64,000 nt of DNA from assembly GCF_006345805.1 (NCBI RefSeq), contig NC_043016.1:12400001-12464000 (forward strand), in the 5' to 3' direction. The stretch's first letter is position 1. Every line of letters begins with the position of its first letter. The position numbers and the translations under genes were made by a program. The stretch is from Octopus sinensis. Its lineage: Eukaryota. Below are positions 9,807-60,335 of this stretch, one piece after another. A model generated the notes under the pieces. It was given only the letters and a program-made list of their open reading frames with translations, did no database searches and had not been told where the DNA came from.

Positions 9807-9954
9807 GTAAGAATTAATTCTGATTCCTTTTATTTTTTTGTCATTCCAGTCATAATTTTTTCTTTCTTTAAATTTAATTTTTCTTACATATATTTATTGC
9901 AGACATTAATATTAACCTTTTCTCTAAAATCTTGACAAAAATTATTTCTTTTAG

Positions 9955-10031
9955 ATAAATTCAAAGGATGCGTTGAAACGATCCGTAGCATCAATGATTC
10001 TAAAGTTCTTTTGAACTTTTTGATTGAGAAG
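9955..10031 (+). CDS. KIF4: KIF4 exon (DKFKGCVETIRSINDSKVLLNFLIEK)
   Basis: ttAG/GTaag, 77 nt, phase 1-0; aligns with human [23 protein letters not shown]. Confidence 0.9.
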
Positions 10032-10308
10032 GTAAGATTTTTATATTTTTCTTATCTCAACCGTTTAGCATTCAGATTATTCTGTCAAATGTGATGCTTA
10101 TTTTATCCACATTGTGTTGAATCAATCATGTATTTGTTTACTTTTAGAATGGCATTGTAAGGTTGGTGTGATATGCCAGATCTGGCTGATCTGAGCATAA
10201 AATAAGCAGGCTGTATGAGTTGGATCTGATCCTCTACATAAAATAGGTGGAATATTTGAGCTGGATGTAGCCAATGTAAATGCTAAAAAGTTAAAAGAGG
10301 ATATATAT

Positions 10309-10672
10309 CATCATCATTTAACATCTGTTTTCCATGCTAGCATGGGTTGGATGGTTCGAATGGGATCTGGGAAACCAGGAGGCTGCACCAGGCTCCAGTC
10401 TGATCTGGCAGTGTTTCTACAGCTGGATGCCCTTCCTAACGCCAACCACTCCAAGAGTGTAGTGGGTGCTTTTACATGCCACCGGCACGAGGGCCAGTTT
10501 GCTGGTACTGACAACGGCCATGCGCAAATGGTGCTTTTTACGTGCCACCTGCACAGGAGCCAGTCCAGTGGCACTGGCGACGGCCACGCTCGAATGTTTT
10601 ATGTGCCACCAGCACAAGTGCTAGTAAGGTGATGCGGTAACGATCACACTTGAATGGTGTGCTTAACGTGCC
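10309..10672 (-). mobile_element. Stand-alone LINE 3' UTR/(GAT)n tail (family C)
   Basis: catcatcatttaacatctgttttccatgctagc...; many more copies at ~140-275, 7880-8113, 12760-13048, 31344-31700, 38870-39050, 40757-41110, 44933-45215, 46073-46508. Confidence 0.85.
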
Positions 10673-10923
10673 ATATATATAAATAAATGTATGTGTATTT
10701 TTTCACTGTTTACAAATAACACGGGAAAAATAAATAAACAGGTACCAGGGTAGCAAAAATTCAGGCAAGTACCAAGGATATAACAGCCAACTTATAAAGG
10801 TAGAAACTCCAGGTTTTGGTGAAATGTTTTTATATAACATAGATAAATAAATAAATGGAGTAAATGCAGGTGTTATTCAAATCTTTAATGATTTTAATAA
10901 CACCTGCGTTTAACTCCATTTAT

Positions 10924-10959
<36 letters not shown>

Positions 10960-11098
10960 ATATATTTACTGGAAAGCAATATTCTCGTATTGCATTACTA
11001 TTTTCATTGAAACTTCTTCACTGTTCTCGTTCTGTTAACGTTTTGGCGTTCAGACGAGTGTACTGGCATAGATGTGCCAACATTTGAAATATTGTCGA

Positions 11099-11180
11099 GG
11101 TATATGTAGCTGATGAAGATAAATCAAATATACGTTGGCAGACGTATTTTGAAGAATCTGAAACCGGTACTGTAATATCC
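11099..11180 (+). ncRNA. Type I hammerhead ribozyme motif with intact core and GUA cleavage triplet
   Basis: stem I 11099-11109/11170-11180, CTGATGA 11110-11116, stem II AGAT/ATCT plus inner TACGT/ACGTA, GAAA 11160-11163, palindromic stem III ACCGGT, A17 at 11169. Confidence 0.75.
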
Positions 11181-11603
11181 GTTTCTAGGTATTTCATTTT
11201 TCAGATGTTTGTTGCACACACGCATCTTTACTAGTACATACGCAGTGAAGCTATACATTAGCGTCGTATTTATTACGTTCGCTATTTTCCAGTAAATATT
11301 GGTGCTTCGTTGTGCCATTTATTTACTTTTATGTATATATATATATATTCACAATTTAGTAGTTCTCTGCAAAACATGCTTCTTATTGAAGCAAATATTT
11401 ACATATAGCTAGAATGGCAATAATTTTCCATCTAACTTCAAGTTTTCAGTTCCTTTAAGACAGATTTTAGCACAGTCCACTCGACTGTTGGTTCTTTTTT
11501 TATTTATTTATATATTTATTGCAATGTCACTTGCAGGTGAATTAATGTCTTGTAATTTTTCATATTCTCATGCAGTCACATTAATTGAATCTCTTTCATA
11601 CAG

Positions 11604-11774
11604 AGTATCAAAGAACGGATTGATCATAATAATGACAAGTCTGCTGTAAAAGACCTTAAAAATAATTATTTGGAAGCTGTCAAAGAGAAAGACTCAAGTG
11701 AAATGAAAGCGAAATCATTACAGAATCAGCATGAATCAAGTCTTGTGGACTTGCAGCAGAAATATGAAAGCAAG
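11604..11774 (+). CDS. KIF4: KIF4 exon (SIKERIDHNN...LQQKYESK)
   Basis: acAG/GTaac, 171 nt open frame, coiled-coil composition ending like human EQQHQEK. Confidence 0.88.
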
Positions 11775-16225: not shown

Positions 16226-16724
16226 GTATAAGCTTTTAACAGTGAAATGATAAAAAAATTGATAAAGACACCAGTTGCAAATTTACTTTATACAAGTTAG
16301 TGACTTCCCTGTACCAGATGAGGTCTCATTTTATTTTAATAATCATTACTAGGCTTATTATGTATAATATAATTACTATTATTTGTAGAATTTAGTATGT
16401 TTATTATGTTACCTCACTGCACCTCCTTGGAGGTGGGATTGCCTTCTTTGAGAACCTCTGCTCTGGACAGATACATAAATTAATGTCTGAATAAGGAGGA
16501 AATCCTAGACATTTGCTTTCCTGGTAGTGAAATGTTTAGCATGGAATCTTGGAGATGATGTACAGCAAGGGTTGTGGGGAAACGACCATAGATTATCGTA
16601 TTAGGAAACGGTCCAGTTCCAACTTCCATGACATTTTCTTGTTGGAATTTAAAATTTTCTCTGGAGGTCTAACTGAGTTTTGTAATATTAAAAGGATTAT
16701 TCTTGATAAATAATATTCGTTTAA

Positions 16725-18324: not shown

Positions 18325-19400
18325 TCATCATCATCATCATCATCGTTTAACATCTGTTTTCCATGCTGGCATGGGTTGGCTGGTTCGACTGGGGTCTGGG
18401 AAGCCAGGAGGCTGATCTGGCAGTGTTTCTATAGCTGGATGCCCTTCCTAACACCAACTACTCCAAGAGTGTAGTGGGTGCTTTTTACATGCCACTGGCA
18501 CGGAAACCAGTCAATGCGGCGCTGCCATCGGCCACGTTCTGATGGTGCTTTTTACATGCCACCGGCATTTGATTTTGATGTTGATGTACTTGACTCAATA
18601 GGTCTCCTCAAGCATGGCATGTCACACTACGATCCAAGGTACTTTTGAGTTGGTTGGTTATGCGACACTGGTGTAGGTTACAGCTGTGATCTCACTTTAT
18701 TTGCCGGGTCTTCTCAGTCACAGGTTTCAGTCTTTTGTCTTTGCCTCTGTGAGGCCCAACGTTTGAAGGTCATGCTTGACCACCTCATTACATGTCTTCC
18801 TGGGTCTACCTCTACCCCGGATTCCTTCAACTGTTTGGGAGTAGCACTTCTTCACACATCTCTCCTCATCCATCCGTAGTACATGACATTACACATCCAG
18901 TGAATCATGCTAGCTTCATTTCTTTCAAGCCTACGCATGTCTTCAGCAGTTACGGCCCATGTTTCACTGCCGTGAAGCATTGCAGTTCATATACATGCAT
19001 CGTAAAATCTACTTTTCAACCTGAGCGAGAGGCACTTTGTCACCAGCAGGGGTAGAAGCTTTCTGAACTTTGCCCAGGCTATTCTTATTCTAGTGGCAAT
19101 GCTCTCTGAGCATCCACCCTCACTATAGACTTGGTCACCTAGGTAGCAGAAGCTATCAACTACTTCTAGTTTCTTCTCCTGGAATTTGATGGAATCAGTT
19201 TTCTGAGCATCTGCAGTGTTTATTGCCCCTGTGCATCTGCTGCACATGAAAGCTATCTTCTCAATTAATCTTCCTTTGATGTTGCTGCACTGCTTATGTG
19301 CCCATAGCTTACACTGGGTATATCTAATGGTGTTTCTACCTACACCTTTTCTACAGATCGAGCAGGGCCACCTACCTGCATAGAGGAGATCCCAGGGGCA
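18325..19400 (-). mobile_element. 5'-truncated RTE-type LINE: ORF2 C-terminus with a Cys/His finger, 3' UTR and (GAT)n tail
   Basis: ORF 18987..19463 with KLEVVDSFCYLGD and SIATRIRIAWAKFRKLLPLL; catcatcat tail at 18325. Confidence 0.85.
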
Positions 19401-20436
19401 ACCTGTCTTGATAAGTAATTGATTTACCCTCCACCCTTTAAAATTGCTGGCCTTGTGCTGCACAAGTGTTGGGCCTCATGGAGGCAATGACCAAGACCTT
19501 TGGCATTTTGTCGTGCTTGAGAAAACGACACATCAAGCTGAGCAAAATTGCAGTCGTGGCACATAAAAGCACCCATTACACTCTCAGAGTGGTTGGCATT
19601 AGGAATGGCATCCAGCCATAGAAAGTCATGCCAAATCAGACTGGAGCCTGGTGCAGCCTTCCAGTGTGCCAGCCCAGTCTAACCGTCCAATCCATGCCAG
19701 CATGGACAACGGATGTTTGATGATGATGATGATGAACTGGCAGAATTGTTACTGCACCAGGCAAAATGCTTTGCATGTCTTCCAGCTTTACATTCTGAGT
19801 TCAAATTCTTTCAAGGTTGATTTTTTGCCTTTTGTCCTTTTGGAGTTGTTGAAATAAAGCACCAGTTGTATAATGGGGTGGGGTTAATGTAATGAAGTAT
19901 CACCTTTAAAATTGCTGGCTTTGTTTTTTTATTTTTTTTTGTTTGAGAATTCAAATTCTGCTGGGGTCAATAAATAAAATTACATGTCATTTATTGAGAT
20001 TAGTTGAGCTTTTAAGGATTTCTTTAAAATGCAAGGATTTGTGTCTGTGTGAAAAAAATTTCTTGTTAATAGAGACTCTCGACAGGTTATCTTGCAACCT
20101 AATTAATTAATTATGCCAGATATTGTTGAGAATTTTCAGTGATATTAACTGCAATGGCGCCCTGCTTTCGGTAAAAGTTGATGGGGATCACTAATAAATG
20201 AAATAGGGAAGGCAAGCAGATCAAGGTCTGTTGAGATGTGATCACAGGTGGAAAGGTGCTCAGTGTTATAGAGATGCTTGTTTATGACTTTATTAATGAG
20301 ATGTTAAACAAGTTATTTTCTAACCTCTTAATTTACACATTTTTTTTTTAATTTCCATATTTTGAATCTGTATATAAAGAAGAATAAGTACACACATTAT
20401 TTTGGGTCACTTATGATTTATTATGAAATTATTGAT

Positions 20437-39835: not shown

Positions 39836-39861
39836 AGGGATAGAGAAGCAGAAAAATTGGT

Positions 39862-39940
39862 ACATATTCTAAAAAAATTGGAATGATACAGAGAAGATTA
39901 GCTTGGCCCCTGCGCAAGGATGACACACAGATTCGTGAAG
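39862..39940 (+). pseudogene. U6: U6 snRNA retropseudogene, truncated at both ends and fused to a SINE
   Basis: acatattctaaaaaaattggaatgatACAGAGAagattagcttggcccctgcgcaaggatgacacacagattcgtgaag matches U6 nt ~18-95 including the ACAGAGA box; 5' stem-loop and 3' oligo-U are absent. Confidence 0.93.
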
Positions 39941-40152
39941 TGGTGAGCTGGCAGAAATGTTAGCATGCTGGGCAAAATGCCTAGCGGTATTTCGTCTGTC
40001 TTTACGTTGAGTTCAAATTCTGCCGAGGTCGACTTTGCCTTTCATCCTCTCGGTGTTGATAAATAAAGCACCAGTTACCCACCGGGGTTGATGTAATCGA
40101 CTTAATCCCTTTGTCTGTCCTTGTTTGTTTCCTCTATGTTTAGCCCCTTGTG
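39941..40152 (+). mobile_element. SINE family B fused downstream of the U6 fragment
   Basis: family-B body and tail gccccttgtgggcaataaagaaataag; more partial copies near 17850, 38430, 43590 and 46590. Confidence 0.88.
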
Positions 40153-44662: not shown

Positions 44663-45442
44663 TACACAGAAAAGAAACAAGGAGAGAAAAAAATGTCTAT
44701 ATACACACACACACAAATAACATCTACAATTGCTGGAAATAAGAGCTAAAAAATATAACTTTATTTTATCCAGTTTCAGCTCACAAGGTGTGGCCATGCT
44801 GGGGCACATATATATAAATACAAGAAGACATAATGATAAATTAATGTATTACGATATATTAAATACATTATGATATAGGTGGCTAAAGCAATTAAAAACC
44901 AAAAAAGTAGAATGCATAAATAAGGGTGCAAATCATCATCATCATTTAGCGTCCGCTTTCCATGCTAGCATGGGTTGGACGGTTTAACTGGGGTCTGGGA
45001 AGCCGGAAGGCTTCATCAGGCCCAGTCAGATTTGGCAGTGTTTCTACGGCTGGATGCCCTTCCTAACGCCAACCACTCCGTGAGTGTAGTGGGTGCTTTT
45101 TACGTGCCACCTGCACAGGTGCCAGACAGAGCTGGCAAACGGCCACGAACAGATGGTGTTTTTTTCGTGCCACCGGCACGGGGGCCAGGCGAGGCTGGCA
45201 ACGGACACGAACGGATGACACCTACAATTGCTAGAAATAGGAGCTAAAGAATATAACTCAAATAGCCACACAAAATCAACCTGATGAGATGTTCAAGGGA
45301 CTGCGAAAGGTCTTTCAAATTACTTCATTCTGTGAGTTTCATCTCACTGGAGAAAGATGTGGCTTGCTACTCACAGTTCCTTGAACATTTCATGAGGCTG
45401 GTATTTGTGTGGCTATTGAGTTATATTCTTTAGCTCCTATTT

Positions 45443-45542
45443 NNNNNNNNNNNNNNNNNNNNNNNNNNNNNNNNNNNNNNNNNNNNNNNNNNNNNNNNNN
45501 NNNNNNNNNNNNNNNNNNNNNNNNNNNNNNNNNNNNNNNNNN
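45443..45542. other. Assembly gap (100 N)
   Basis: run of N. Confidence 1.
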
Positions 45543-58557: not shown

Positions 58558-59619
58558 CTAAATTAGAGAAAAAAATATGAAAAATGAAAAAAAAGTGATT
58601 ATGAATTGTACAATATGTCATCAAAAAGTGAAACAGTGTGTTGGAAATGATGGGTGTTTCAGTATAAATTAATATGTTTTAAGTTACCTGAATGTTTAAT
58701 TTAGGAAAATATTAATTAACAGTTTTGATAAAGCAAACAGAAAAAATAAATACAAAAAAAAAAGGGAAAACAGTGTGGTATTTTAGAGTTCCATATATAA
58801 TGGAAATGACACAGAATGGCTAAATGGTTAAGAAGTTTATTTCCCAGTCATGAGCACTTGAATTTGATTCTACTGTATGGCTTCTTTGGGCAAGAATTTT
58901 TCAAAAATGCCTCGCATCAACCCAAAACCTGCAAGTGAAATTGGATAGATGGAAATTGTGTGGAAGCTTGTCACAATGTCATGCTGATTCCACCAAGAAT
59001 AATGATAATTCTGAGGAATATTCAGCCACTTACATGTTAATTCAATGAACAGGTAATTCAGTTGATTGAACAACTGAAATAATCAACATCAAAACTGATG
59101 AAGATCCTTCTATTACAAAGGAGAAATACCAAATTTTTTTTTGTTTGGTTTCCCTTTTTAGTTTCTTCAACATTTTTTCCAATTGATTTCATATTTGGTG
59201 TATTGGTGTAGGTTTGCATGATAATCACTGACATGAAATTCATTTTCGCCATAAATCAATAAATAAAGAGTTAACAGCTTTTAAAGTTTGCGAATTTTGG
59301 GTAATTTTAGCTAATTGAAAACCACAGATATATAGGTGCCTGTTTCCATAGTAACAAGCCAAACTGTTATCAAGCTGCTTACCCATGTGGTCATTTTTCA
59401 CTTATTAAATGCTTAAAACACATGAGGTCAGAAGGAGGTGGTTGTAAAAGTAATACCTAAATAGGCCTTAAATCATGCACCAATATTTTTTTTTGGTTGG
59501 TGGGTGTTGCATAATTGTTTGAGTTCCCATATGTAAAATACAAATTCGCAAAAATTTTCTGAAAATTCCCCAAAATACAGGAGTTATTCCCCAAAATACA
59601 GCATGCATAAAGCAAGTTA

Positions 59620-60335
59620 TCTTGCAGGAATTCCCAGCTGCCTCTATGTCACAGAACTGCAGCTCCTCCTCCCTATCGTCTAATTTCTTGGTAAGGGTAT
59701 CCCTAAACCTCTGACCATGTGAAGGGCTCCTAAGCTTCCAAGTCCTTCTTTTCCAGATTGGTCTGGTTTTTGGTATCCTTCTGACCGCAAGTCTAAAGTC
59801 ATTAATTACTAGTCTATGCTGAGGGGTACACTCTTCACGAAGGAGGGTCTTTGTATATAAGAGCAACCATGCATCCTACTGTCTGGTGAGAATGAAATCA
59901 ATCTGACTAGTGGAGTCACCTGATCGATAGGCTATCAGGTGACTAGCTGGCTTCCTGAAGTTGGTGCTGCAGATCAATAGATTATTTGCAGTGCAGAACT
60001 CCAGGAGCCTAGTTTTCTCTTCATTTCTGGTACCAACTCCATGGCTCTCATGTACACCATGGAAGATACCAGGTTGCTGTCTGACATGCCCATTAAAATC
60101 TCCAGTCACAAAGATGAGATCATTGTCACTCGTCTTTGAGGTAGCCTGTTGAAGAATATCATAAAAGTGATCGTTCTGTTCTTTTGGTAGGCCCGCTTGT
60201 TGGGCGTAGGCAGAGATAATTGTAGCTATACCATTCTAGACTAGCCTGAGTTTAAGTACTCTATTGCACACCCTCACCACCTCTATGATCTTATCCACCC
60301 ATTTCTCTGCAAGAAGTATGCCCACACCCTGTATT
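59620..60335 (-). mobile_element. LINE AP-endonuclease domain fragment
   Basis: IISAYAQQAG-like codons near 60210, GDFNGHV, RLLEFCTANNL, SQIDFILTR motifs. Confidence 0.88.

Follow-up and report, generated by a model that had tools for sequence, protein, structure and literature searches.

The window (the whole 64-kb stretch of DNA that was analysed) carries exons of a kinesin gene on its + strand, and a motif with the layout of a type I hammerhead ribozyme lies inside one intron of this gene. When the open frames of the + strand were concatenated, they retrieved 'chromosome-associated kinesin KIF4A-like' of Octopus sinensis; a cluster member from O. bimaculoides is a 1000-aa KIF4A with a kinesin motor domain. 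Using tblastn, several exons were located, among them an upstream exon at 9954-10031 (+; ending in DKFKGCVETIRSINDSKVLLNFLIEK; 100% identity over 26 aa to the O. sinensis KIF4A-like protein P0001) and a downstream exon at 11604-11774 (+; SIKERIDHNNDKS…QQKYESK). The intron between them, delimited by tblastn and by reading the splice sites, spans 10032-11603 (+), with GT at 10032 and AG at 11602-11603. The motif occupies 11099-11180 on the sense strand of this intron, 434 nt upstream of the 3' splice site, and both the tblastn alignments and the GT/AG sites agree with the exon coordinates, strand and sense orientation given in the initial annotation of this DNA. The same intron also holds a SINE-like repeat and a hairpin.

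As had been reported in that annotation, the conserved hammerhead core is complete on a direct reading of 11099-11180 (+). The 5' strand of helix I (positions 2.x; GGTATATGTAG) is at 11099-11109 and its 3' strand (positions 1.x; CTGTAATATCC) at 11170-11180, both assigned from the sequence and a constrained fold. The core bases C3-A9, CTGATGA (CUGAUGA in RNA), lie at 11110-11116, as found by eye and by a descriptor scan; a helix II of 43 nt follows at 11117-11159, read from the sequence and from folds, and G12, A13 and A14 (GAA) are at 11160-11162, with GAAA covering 11160-11163. Helix III is represented by the palindrome ACCGGT (ACCGGU) at 11163-11168, that is, by the pair A11163-U11168 (15.1-16.1) and CCGG, and is followed through the GTA (GUA) triplet at 11167-11169 by H17, which is A11169 and not G; by hammerhead numbering, cleavage is predicted between 11169 and 11170 (between GUA and C). 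Because helix I is open-ended, the topology is that of type I. Helix II consists, in order, of AGAT/ATCT (4 bp at the core), a 3x3 internal loop AAA/AGA, TCAAA/TTTGA (5 bp), a bulged T, ATACGT/ACGTAT (6-7 bp) and the terminal loop TGGCAG. At 43 nt, it exceeds by far the helix II of the metazoan hammerheads described so far. The earlier description of stem II as AGAT/ATCT with an extension, and of stem III as self-complementary ACCGGT, matches the sequence; the estimate of ~11 bp for stem I was roughly right, at 10 bp with one bulged A, but only five of these pairs are contiguous beside the core. The bulged A after the 5 bp of helix I and the AAA/AGA loop after the 4 bp of helix II stand at the places expected for a tertiary contact between helices I and II. 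The pair at 10.1-11.1 is A11117-U11159 here, without the consensus G10.1-C11.1, which is highly conserved (Cervera & de la Peña 2014, PMC4209133); compensatory variants at this pair have been recorded in the cave-cricket pDo500 satellite hammerheads (PMC2837043).

The frequency of such a motif was assessed with a descriptor that specified CUGANGA, a helix II of at least 4 bp, GAAA, a helix III formed by a palindrome or by a hairpin of at least 3 bp, UH at the cleavage site and a helix I of at least 4 bp. Both strands of the 64-kb window contained a single match, the motif at 11099-11180, and the orthologous O. sinensis locus (L001) contained none. In 1500 first-order Markov windows generated with the dinucleotide statistics of the window, the mean was 0.011 matches per 64 kb; with a palindromic helix III, the expectation fell to 0.0007 per 64-kb window (1500 simulated windows). 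An empirical control was provided by 60 metagenomic sequences with CTGATGAR … YTGAAACCGGTAC at the right spacing, i.e., with both core boxes and the same GAAACCGGTAC, and in none of the 60 did helices I and II both reach 3 bp. These data indicate that a chance origin of the motif in this window is unlikely; a genome of a few Gb would, however, hold some chance examples, and extrapolation gives hundreds of motifs that fit the general descriptor. The Rfam hammerhead models (types I, II and III, HH9 and HH10) gave no match at the gathering score over the whole window and none at E<=10 in scans narrowed to 501 nt and then 111 nt surrounding the motif, and no ribozyme family of Rfam was found on either strand of these three stretches. 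The lack of an Rfam match may be due to the length of helix II (43 nt) and to a helix III that forms no hairpin.

The orthologous loci of O. sinensis (L001), O. vulgaris (L007) and O. bimaculoides (L008) were then compared with the window by blastn and alignment. The intron is 91-95% identical to the window in O. sinensis and O. vulgaris and ~85-86% identical in O. bimaculoides; on these identities, the window would derive from a fourth species, nearer to the vulgaris group. Alignment to all three loci breaks at ~10947-10957 and restarts at 11315-11317. A segment of 348 bp at 10967-11314 (+), with boundaries uncertain by a few bases, is missing from the orthologous intron in all three Octopus loci, which have an empty (TA)n site at this place. 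The empty site of O. sinensis and O. vulgaris reads CCATTTATTTATTTATCT(C/A)TATATATATATAT-TCAC, one short copy. In the window, the left target copy (10916-10966) consists of CCATTTATTTAT followed by (CTAT)n and (TA)n and aligns with the sequence that the three species have once at the empty site; the right target copy (11315-11349; CCATTTATTTAC…(TA)nT) aligns to the same empty-site bases, and both flanks align to the same ~32 bp of the O. sinensis locus, L001 16632-16663. In all, ~35 bp of (TA)n-containing target is present on both sides of the 348 bp. A (TATC)n microsatellite has expanded in the left copy in the window's lineage. The two copies differ more than a very young duplication would predict, though they are microsatellite-like. 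The (TA)n microsatellite at the insertion point stands at the foot of a conserved intronic hairpin.

Because the target is doubled around the 348 bp and single in the relatives, the alignments indicate that 10967-11314 is an insertion specific to the window's lineage, with a long target duplication; one insertion is also more parsimonious than repeated precise deletions, since the outgroup O. bimaculoides lacks the segment as well. Judged by these alignments, the insertion took place after the separation from the O. vulgaris/O. sinensis lineage, so that the copy should show little decay and the family it came from should remain identifiable in the source genome. Given this youth and the little decay expected, A-U at 10.1-11.1 is more likely a family trait than the outcome of two mutations. 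The empty site in three species further implies that the motif arrived with a lineage-specific mobile insertion; the comparison of orthologous introns, which the initial annotation had proposed as a check, was thus negative for conservation, with O. sinensis, O. vulgaris and O. bimaculoides all empty.

The same bases could also be read as an intronic RNA of the box C/D snoRNA kind, with box C (UGAUGA) at 11111-11116 and box D (CUGA) at 11158-11161, a reading that is considered extremely improbable. The boxes are in the right order, ~48 nt apart, on the sense strand of the intron, and the CUGA owes its existence to the U at 11.1, a departure from the hammerhead consensus; the Rfam C/D matches, however, are weak, with 8-13 bits where the gathering thresholds are 39-80, UGAUGA is preceded by C instead of a purine, no D' box is seen, and the related species lack the whole 348-bp insert in whose middle the region lies. 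This candidate was rejected, as no terminal stem adjoins the boxes and hence there is no kink-turn.

The insert itself is non-coding and has 36% GC, and the ~370-bp non-coding unit between TA-rich microsatellites that had been noted earlier is borne out. Six-frame translations of the insert had no relative among 5.8 billion proteins, and its 64-aa ORF had none among 1.84 billion protein representatives; ARAGORN found no tRNA-derived SINE head, and no Rfam family matched either strand of the insert. A repeat search and folding identified a perfect inverted repeat of 14 nt, with its left arm (ATATTTACTGGAAA) at 10962-10975 and its right arm (TTTCCAGTAAATAT) at 11286-11299, 15 nt inside the right end of the insert. 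The + strand RNA of 10967-11334, a stretch that runs 20 nt beyond the insert into the right target copy, folds at -106.4 kcal/mol, compared with -79.4±5.5 for shuffled sequences (z = -4.9, 100 shuffles), into a mostly rod-like shape that is closed by the inverted repeat 10962-10975/11286-11299 and contains 14 G-U pairs. The minus strand folds at -81.8 kcal/mol, compared with -65.3±4.1 for its shuffles (z = -4.0). The self-complementarity of the insert is therefore real, but specificity for one RNA strand is not clear, because the z values of -4.9 and -4.0 were each obtained against the strand's own shuffles; the difference between the strands is thus no decisive mark of selection at the RNA level.

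A cut-and-paste MITE of the TA-targeting, Tc1/mariner type was rejected as the origin of the insert, since the inverted repeat is not terminal and the flanks form a duplication of ~35 bp instead of a TA duplication. The ends and the long duplication argue against a MITE; they point to staggered nicks that were then filled in, as happens during target-primed reverse transcription. Judged from ORF length and position, no reverse transcriptase or GIY-YIG ORF lies near the insert (six ORFs of at least 140 aa, the nearest ~4 kb away).

Further copies were sought in several collections. Within the 64-kb window, blastn at word size 7 returned TA microsatellite matches alone and no second copy of the insert, and neither a second hammerhead nor a direct repeat of the unit was found, leaving a single unit and no tandem. 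Blastn, nhmmer and a relaxed descriptor found no copy in 257 kb of DNA from O. sinensis, O. vulgaris and O. bimaculoides, a sample made up of loci fetched through transposon-derived and KIF4 proteins. A family-specific hammerhead pattern was absent from viral and metagenome contigs, where a relaxed pattern gave 60 chance matches without the helices. No homologue that could serve for covariation was obtained from the window, the 257 kb of Octopus loci, or the protein, viral and metagenome collections.

Viroid-like RNAs include molecules of ~350 nt in their size range. The insert has about this length, its rod-like fold (z = -4.9) goes together with a hammerhead, and it appears single-copy in all DNA sampled (64 + 257 kb), with the long target duplication typical of capture mediated by a reverse transcriptase. 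It could thus be the endogenised copy of a free circular RNA, viroid-like or satellite-like, which replicated exogenously or in the cytoplasm and was reverse-transcribed once by a host retroelement; it would then not belong to a genomic repeat family. This origin is judged improbable: the minus strand carries no Rfam ribozyme, the viral and metagenome collections gave no match, a palindromic helix III of 1 bp is a hallmark of genomic metazoan type I hammerheads (PMC4209133, PMC7229834), and 64 + 257 kb is far too small a sample to establish single-copy status.

Metazoan hammerheads are mostly type I, with a helix I of ~6 bp and a helix II of 4 bp, and their helix III, of 1-2 bp with a palindromic loop of 2-4 nt, blocks cleavage of the monomer; an active dimer forms once a second copy is close by (PMC4209133). 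In the axolotl HHR_Amex1, helix III is a single pair with a palindromic tetraloop, and ~6% of monomers with this architecture were cleaved in one hour (PMC7229834). By its sequence, ACCGGU would have exactly the same arrangement. When the core and the helix III bases were constrained to be unpaired, the minimum free energy structure was exactly the hammerhead secondary structure, at -12.8 kcal/mol, with a helix I of 10 bp that includes one bulged A and three G-U pairs, five pairs being contiguous by the core. The unconstrained monomer folds at -16.9 kcal/mol, with part of the core paired with helix III bases. A single ACCGGU is too short for a hairpin, and the (ACCGGU)2 duplex has 6 bp and -10.3 kcal/mol; of the three helices around the core, I and II form in the constrained fold and III solely as an intermolecular palindrome. 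A double hammerhead (2 x -12.8 plus -10.3) is about equal in stability to two inactive monomers (2 x -16.9). Cofolding of two 82-nt copies produced a trivial full-length duplex, which says nothing on the double hammerhead. The weak palindromic helix III, as seen in the sequence, the constrained fold and the literature (PMC4209133), agrees with the dimer requirement that had previously been deduced from stem III.

These features bear on the possible consequences for the host gene. The initial annotation had proposed that the motif could act like the intronic hammerheads of amniotes, cutting KIF4 pre-mRNA during transcription and competing with splicing, and this proposal is not supported by the comparison with the three empty sites. 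A working intronic ribozyme of this kind would fit the complete core and the placement on the sense strand of a real KIF4 intron, 434 nt before its 3' splice site; nevertheless, it is very improbable, as the motif is not conserved (O. sinensis, O. vulgaris and O. bimaculoides all have the empty site), there is one copy whose helix III is unable to form in the monomer, axolotl monomers of the same architecture reach the ~6% per hour cited above (PMC7229834), the competing monomer fold is the more stable (-16.9 vs -12.8 kcal/mol for the constrained fold), and the Rfam models HH9 and HH10 are unmatched. According to PMC2995048, which summarises Dye 2006 and Fong 2009, introns that a hammerhead cuts slowly are still spliced in vivo, and only a fast ribozyme aborted splicing; on that summary, too, regulation of KIF4 is unlikely. 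The insert most likely has little or no effect on KIF4, and the hammerhead probably belongs to the inserted element, as a passenger rather than a regulator of the gene. For any hammerhead on the sense strand of an intron, the orthologous introns should be compared before a regulatory role is proposed.

The main rival reading holds that the motif is a chance look-alike inside a mobile or foldback element of another kind, be it a SINE, a MITE-like element or filler DNA, whose stems happen to flank CUGAUGA and GAAA. Such a coincidence would be in keeping with the absence of an Rfam hammerhead match, with the ease with which both strands of the insert form stems, with the lack of a second copy in 64 + 257 kb and with the extrapolated hundreds of matches in a genome of a few Gb; A-U at 10.1-11.1 and a 43-nt helix II likewise suit AT-rich random sequence, not the consensus. 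It is regarded as unlikely, although it keeps appreciable weight, because the expectations of 0.011 per window, and of 0.0007 for the palindromic type, are low, none of the 60 box-matched controls had both helices, and the coincidence would have had to occur in a young insert that resembles hammerhead-bearing elements in size, GC content, fold and (TA)n target alike. In addition, the 4-bp stem and internal loop of helix II and the 5-bp stem and bulge of helix I reproduce the spacing of canonical metazoan type I hammerheads (PMC4209133), and a MITE, as one form of look-alike, is countered by the non-terminal inverted repeat and the ~35-bp duplication.

Taken together, the complete type I motif, the low chance rate, the empty sites, the long target duplication and the strong fold favour, with moderate confidence, the reading of 10967-11314 as a solitary copy of a hammerhead-bearing, retrozyme-like mobile element. 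Against it stands that one copy is known in 64 + 257 kb, with no family, tandem array or covariation; the solo unit, A-U at 10.1-11.1, the 43-nt helix II and the missing Rfam match also count against it, as do a monomer fold that hides part of the core, a minus strand that folds well too, and target copies that differ. The analysis establishes the motif, the insertion, the target duplication, the fold statistics and the gene context; homology to retrozyme hammerheads, retrotransposition through RNA and low activity are inferred. On this retrozyme-like reading, head-to-tail multimeric transcripts would bring two hammerheads together, their CCGG palindromes would pair into a shared helix III, and each ribozyme would cut after H17. 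The unit-length RNA would then be circularised and copied back to DNA by the reverse transcriptase of a retroelement at staggered nicks. One such copy would have entered the (TA)n microsatellite of the KIF4 intron, doubling ~35 bp of target, and would persist there as a stranded single unit, transcribed as a passenger on the sense strand. Slow or no cleavage, and little effect on KIF4 splicing, would be expected of this copy, the former because no partner hammerhead is nearby, the monomer fold is stabler and 10.1-11.1 is A-U.

A bolder proposal, which is possible but doubtful, is that the insert represents a recently active, undescribed cephalopod family of hammerhead circular-RNA elements, retrozyme-like or endogenised viroid-like, whose ribozyme has a long interrupted helix II and A10.1-U11.1, and which has been mobile since the split from the O. 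vulgaris/O. sinensis lineage. No report of hammerheads or retrozymes in cephalopods was found in the literature searched. If the insert is a real hammerhead retroelement, it would extend circular-RNA retrozyme-like elements to cephalopods, where that literature does not report them, and would offer a dated case for the study of integration, with three empty sites, an intact insert and a target duplication; for metazoan retrozymes, no machinery of integration has yet been identified (PMC7761336).

Among known systems, the amniote intronic hammerheads (HH9, RF02275; HH10, RF02277) resemble the octopus motif in being type I and in lying on the sense strand of an intron of a protein-coding gene. 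They are isolated motifs kept at orthologous sites across amniotes (PMC7761336, and general knowledge); the octopus motif, in contrast, is lacking in three of three congener loci and matches neither HH9 nor HH10. A weak helix III is shared with the hammerheads of newt/salamander satellite 2 and of cave-cricket pDo500, which, according to PMC4209133 (citing Forster 1988) and PMC7229834, are active solely as double hammerheads; these satellites form arrays with thousands of copies, whereas one interspersed copy is found in the octopus DNA.

Penelope-like elements are closer. The target duplications that they leave vary in length, and their preferred sites are microsatellites, which for Naiads means (TA)n (Craig et al. 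2021, PMC8557442), and the insert likewise entered a (TA)n microsatellite and is flanked by a target duplication of unusual length. It differs in having only 348 bp and, by ORF length and position, no reverse transcriptase or GIY-YIG ORF nearby. The min-HHRs in the pLTRs of Penelope-like elements (PMC4209133, PMC8557442) have an unpaired base between A9 and 10.1 and the pair G10.1-C11.1, both of which the octopus motif lacks; the two are alike in type I topology, in a palindromic 15.2-16.2 and loop 3, in dependence on a dimer, and in a short helix I with a helix II that is longer than usual.

Metazoan non-LTR retrozymes, described from corals, mussels and salamanders, are low-GC, non-coding elements of 150-450 bp with type I hammerheads; they occur in tandem, their transcripts are circular RNAs with a high degree of self-pairing, and their mobility probably depends on Penelope-like elements (Cervera & de la Peña 2020, PMC7229834; PMC7761336). 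Unlike retrozymes, which occur as dimers to multimers, the octopus insert is solitary and not part of a head-to-tail array; its helix II has 43 nt where retrozymes have ~4 bp and a loop, its 10.1-11.1 pair is A-U, it has no match to the Rfam model Hammerhead_1, and no second copy is present in 64 + 257 kb. Like retrozymes, the insert is highly self-paired and non-coding, has 36% GC and a length of 348 bp that falls in the 150-450 bp range, and carries a type I hammerhead whose helix III of 1 bp and palindromic tetraloop are like those of HHR_Amex1, and the empty sites in relatives show that it is mobile. Altogether, among the kinds of element described so far, the insert most closely resembles a non-LTR retrozyme or a Penelope-associated hammerhead element.

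The intron of KIF4 that carries the mobile element with the hammerhead motif also contains an AU-rich hairpin at 10839-10935 on the forward strand. This hairpin is approximately 97 nt long and near-perfect, with about 42-45 bp and a folding energy of -52.9 kcal/mol. The mobile element is inserted directly downstream of it, and the target sequence duplicated by the insertion begins at the 3' foot of the hairpin. The hairpin occurs as a single copy in all DNA sampled, and it is conserved in the orthologous KIF4 intron, at the corresponding site, of all three species compared (O. sinensis, O. vulgaris, and O. bimaculoides). Furthermore, compensatory changes are seen at two base pairs of the hairpin, which in O. 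bimaculoides is more conserved than its flanks. A search of Rfam returned no match for the hairpin, which could represent a pre-miRNA-like hairpin or a long double-stranded RNA hairpin (i.e., an editing substrate).

The (TATC)n microsatellite beside the insertion was compared between 10916-10966 of the window and 16632-16663 of the O. sinensis KIF4 locus (L001). Approximately nine units are present in the window, whereas O. sinensis and O. vulgaris have one or two, and the corresponding place in O. bimaculoides is occupied by long tracts of (CT)n and (TA)n. The microsatellite adjoining the insertion is a fast-evolving hotspot. A SINE-like repeat was also identified in the intron at approximately 10307-10620 (forward strand). 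It is abundant, and each of the Octopus loci retrieved contains many copies that are 75-87% identical. The window contains 129 bp (10318-10446) that are missing from the orthologous introns of O. sinensis and O. vulgaris; therefore, at least two lineage-specific length differences are found in the KIF4 intron at 10032-11603.

In the O. sinensis and O. vulgaris (L007) loci, the annotation divides the C-terminal half of KIF4 into separate short models of 140-325 aa, named 'KIF4A-like', 'KIF4B-like', 'uncharacterized', or 'hypothetical'; O. bimaculoides has a single KIF4A model of 1000 aa. The models of the former two species probably fragment one gene.

Elsewhere in the window, a match to the U6 spliceosomal RNA was found at 39853-39962 on the forward strand (70 bits, E = 1e-15). 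The 5' stem-loop is degenerate, a long (AG)n tract precedes the match, and a T-run terminator is not clearly present. The match is probably not a functional gene but a pseudogene or retrocopy derived from U6. An assembly gap of 100 N (45442-45541) is bordered on both sides by low-complexity repeats whose translation gives runs of K, E, and R. Frameshifted LINE fragments lie on the reverse strand at 59471-60235 and 18987-19463; they comprise an AP-endonuclease part and a C-terminal part of the reverse transcriptase that includes a PHD-like zinc finger. At the protein level, the fragments best match Octopus gene models that bear the names 'craniofacial development protein 2-like' or 'reverse transcriptase domain-containing protein', and these models are transposon-derived annotations.
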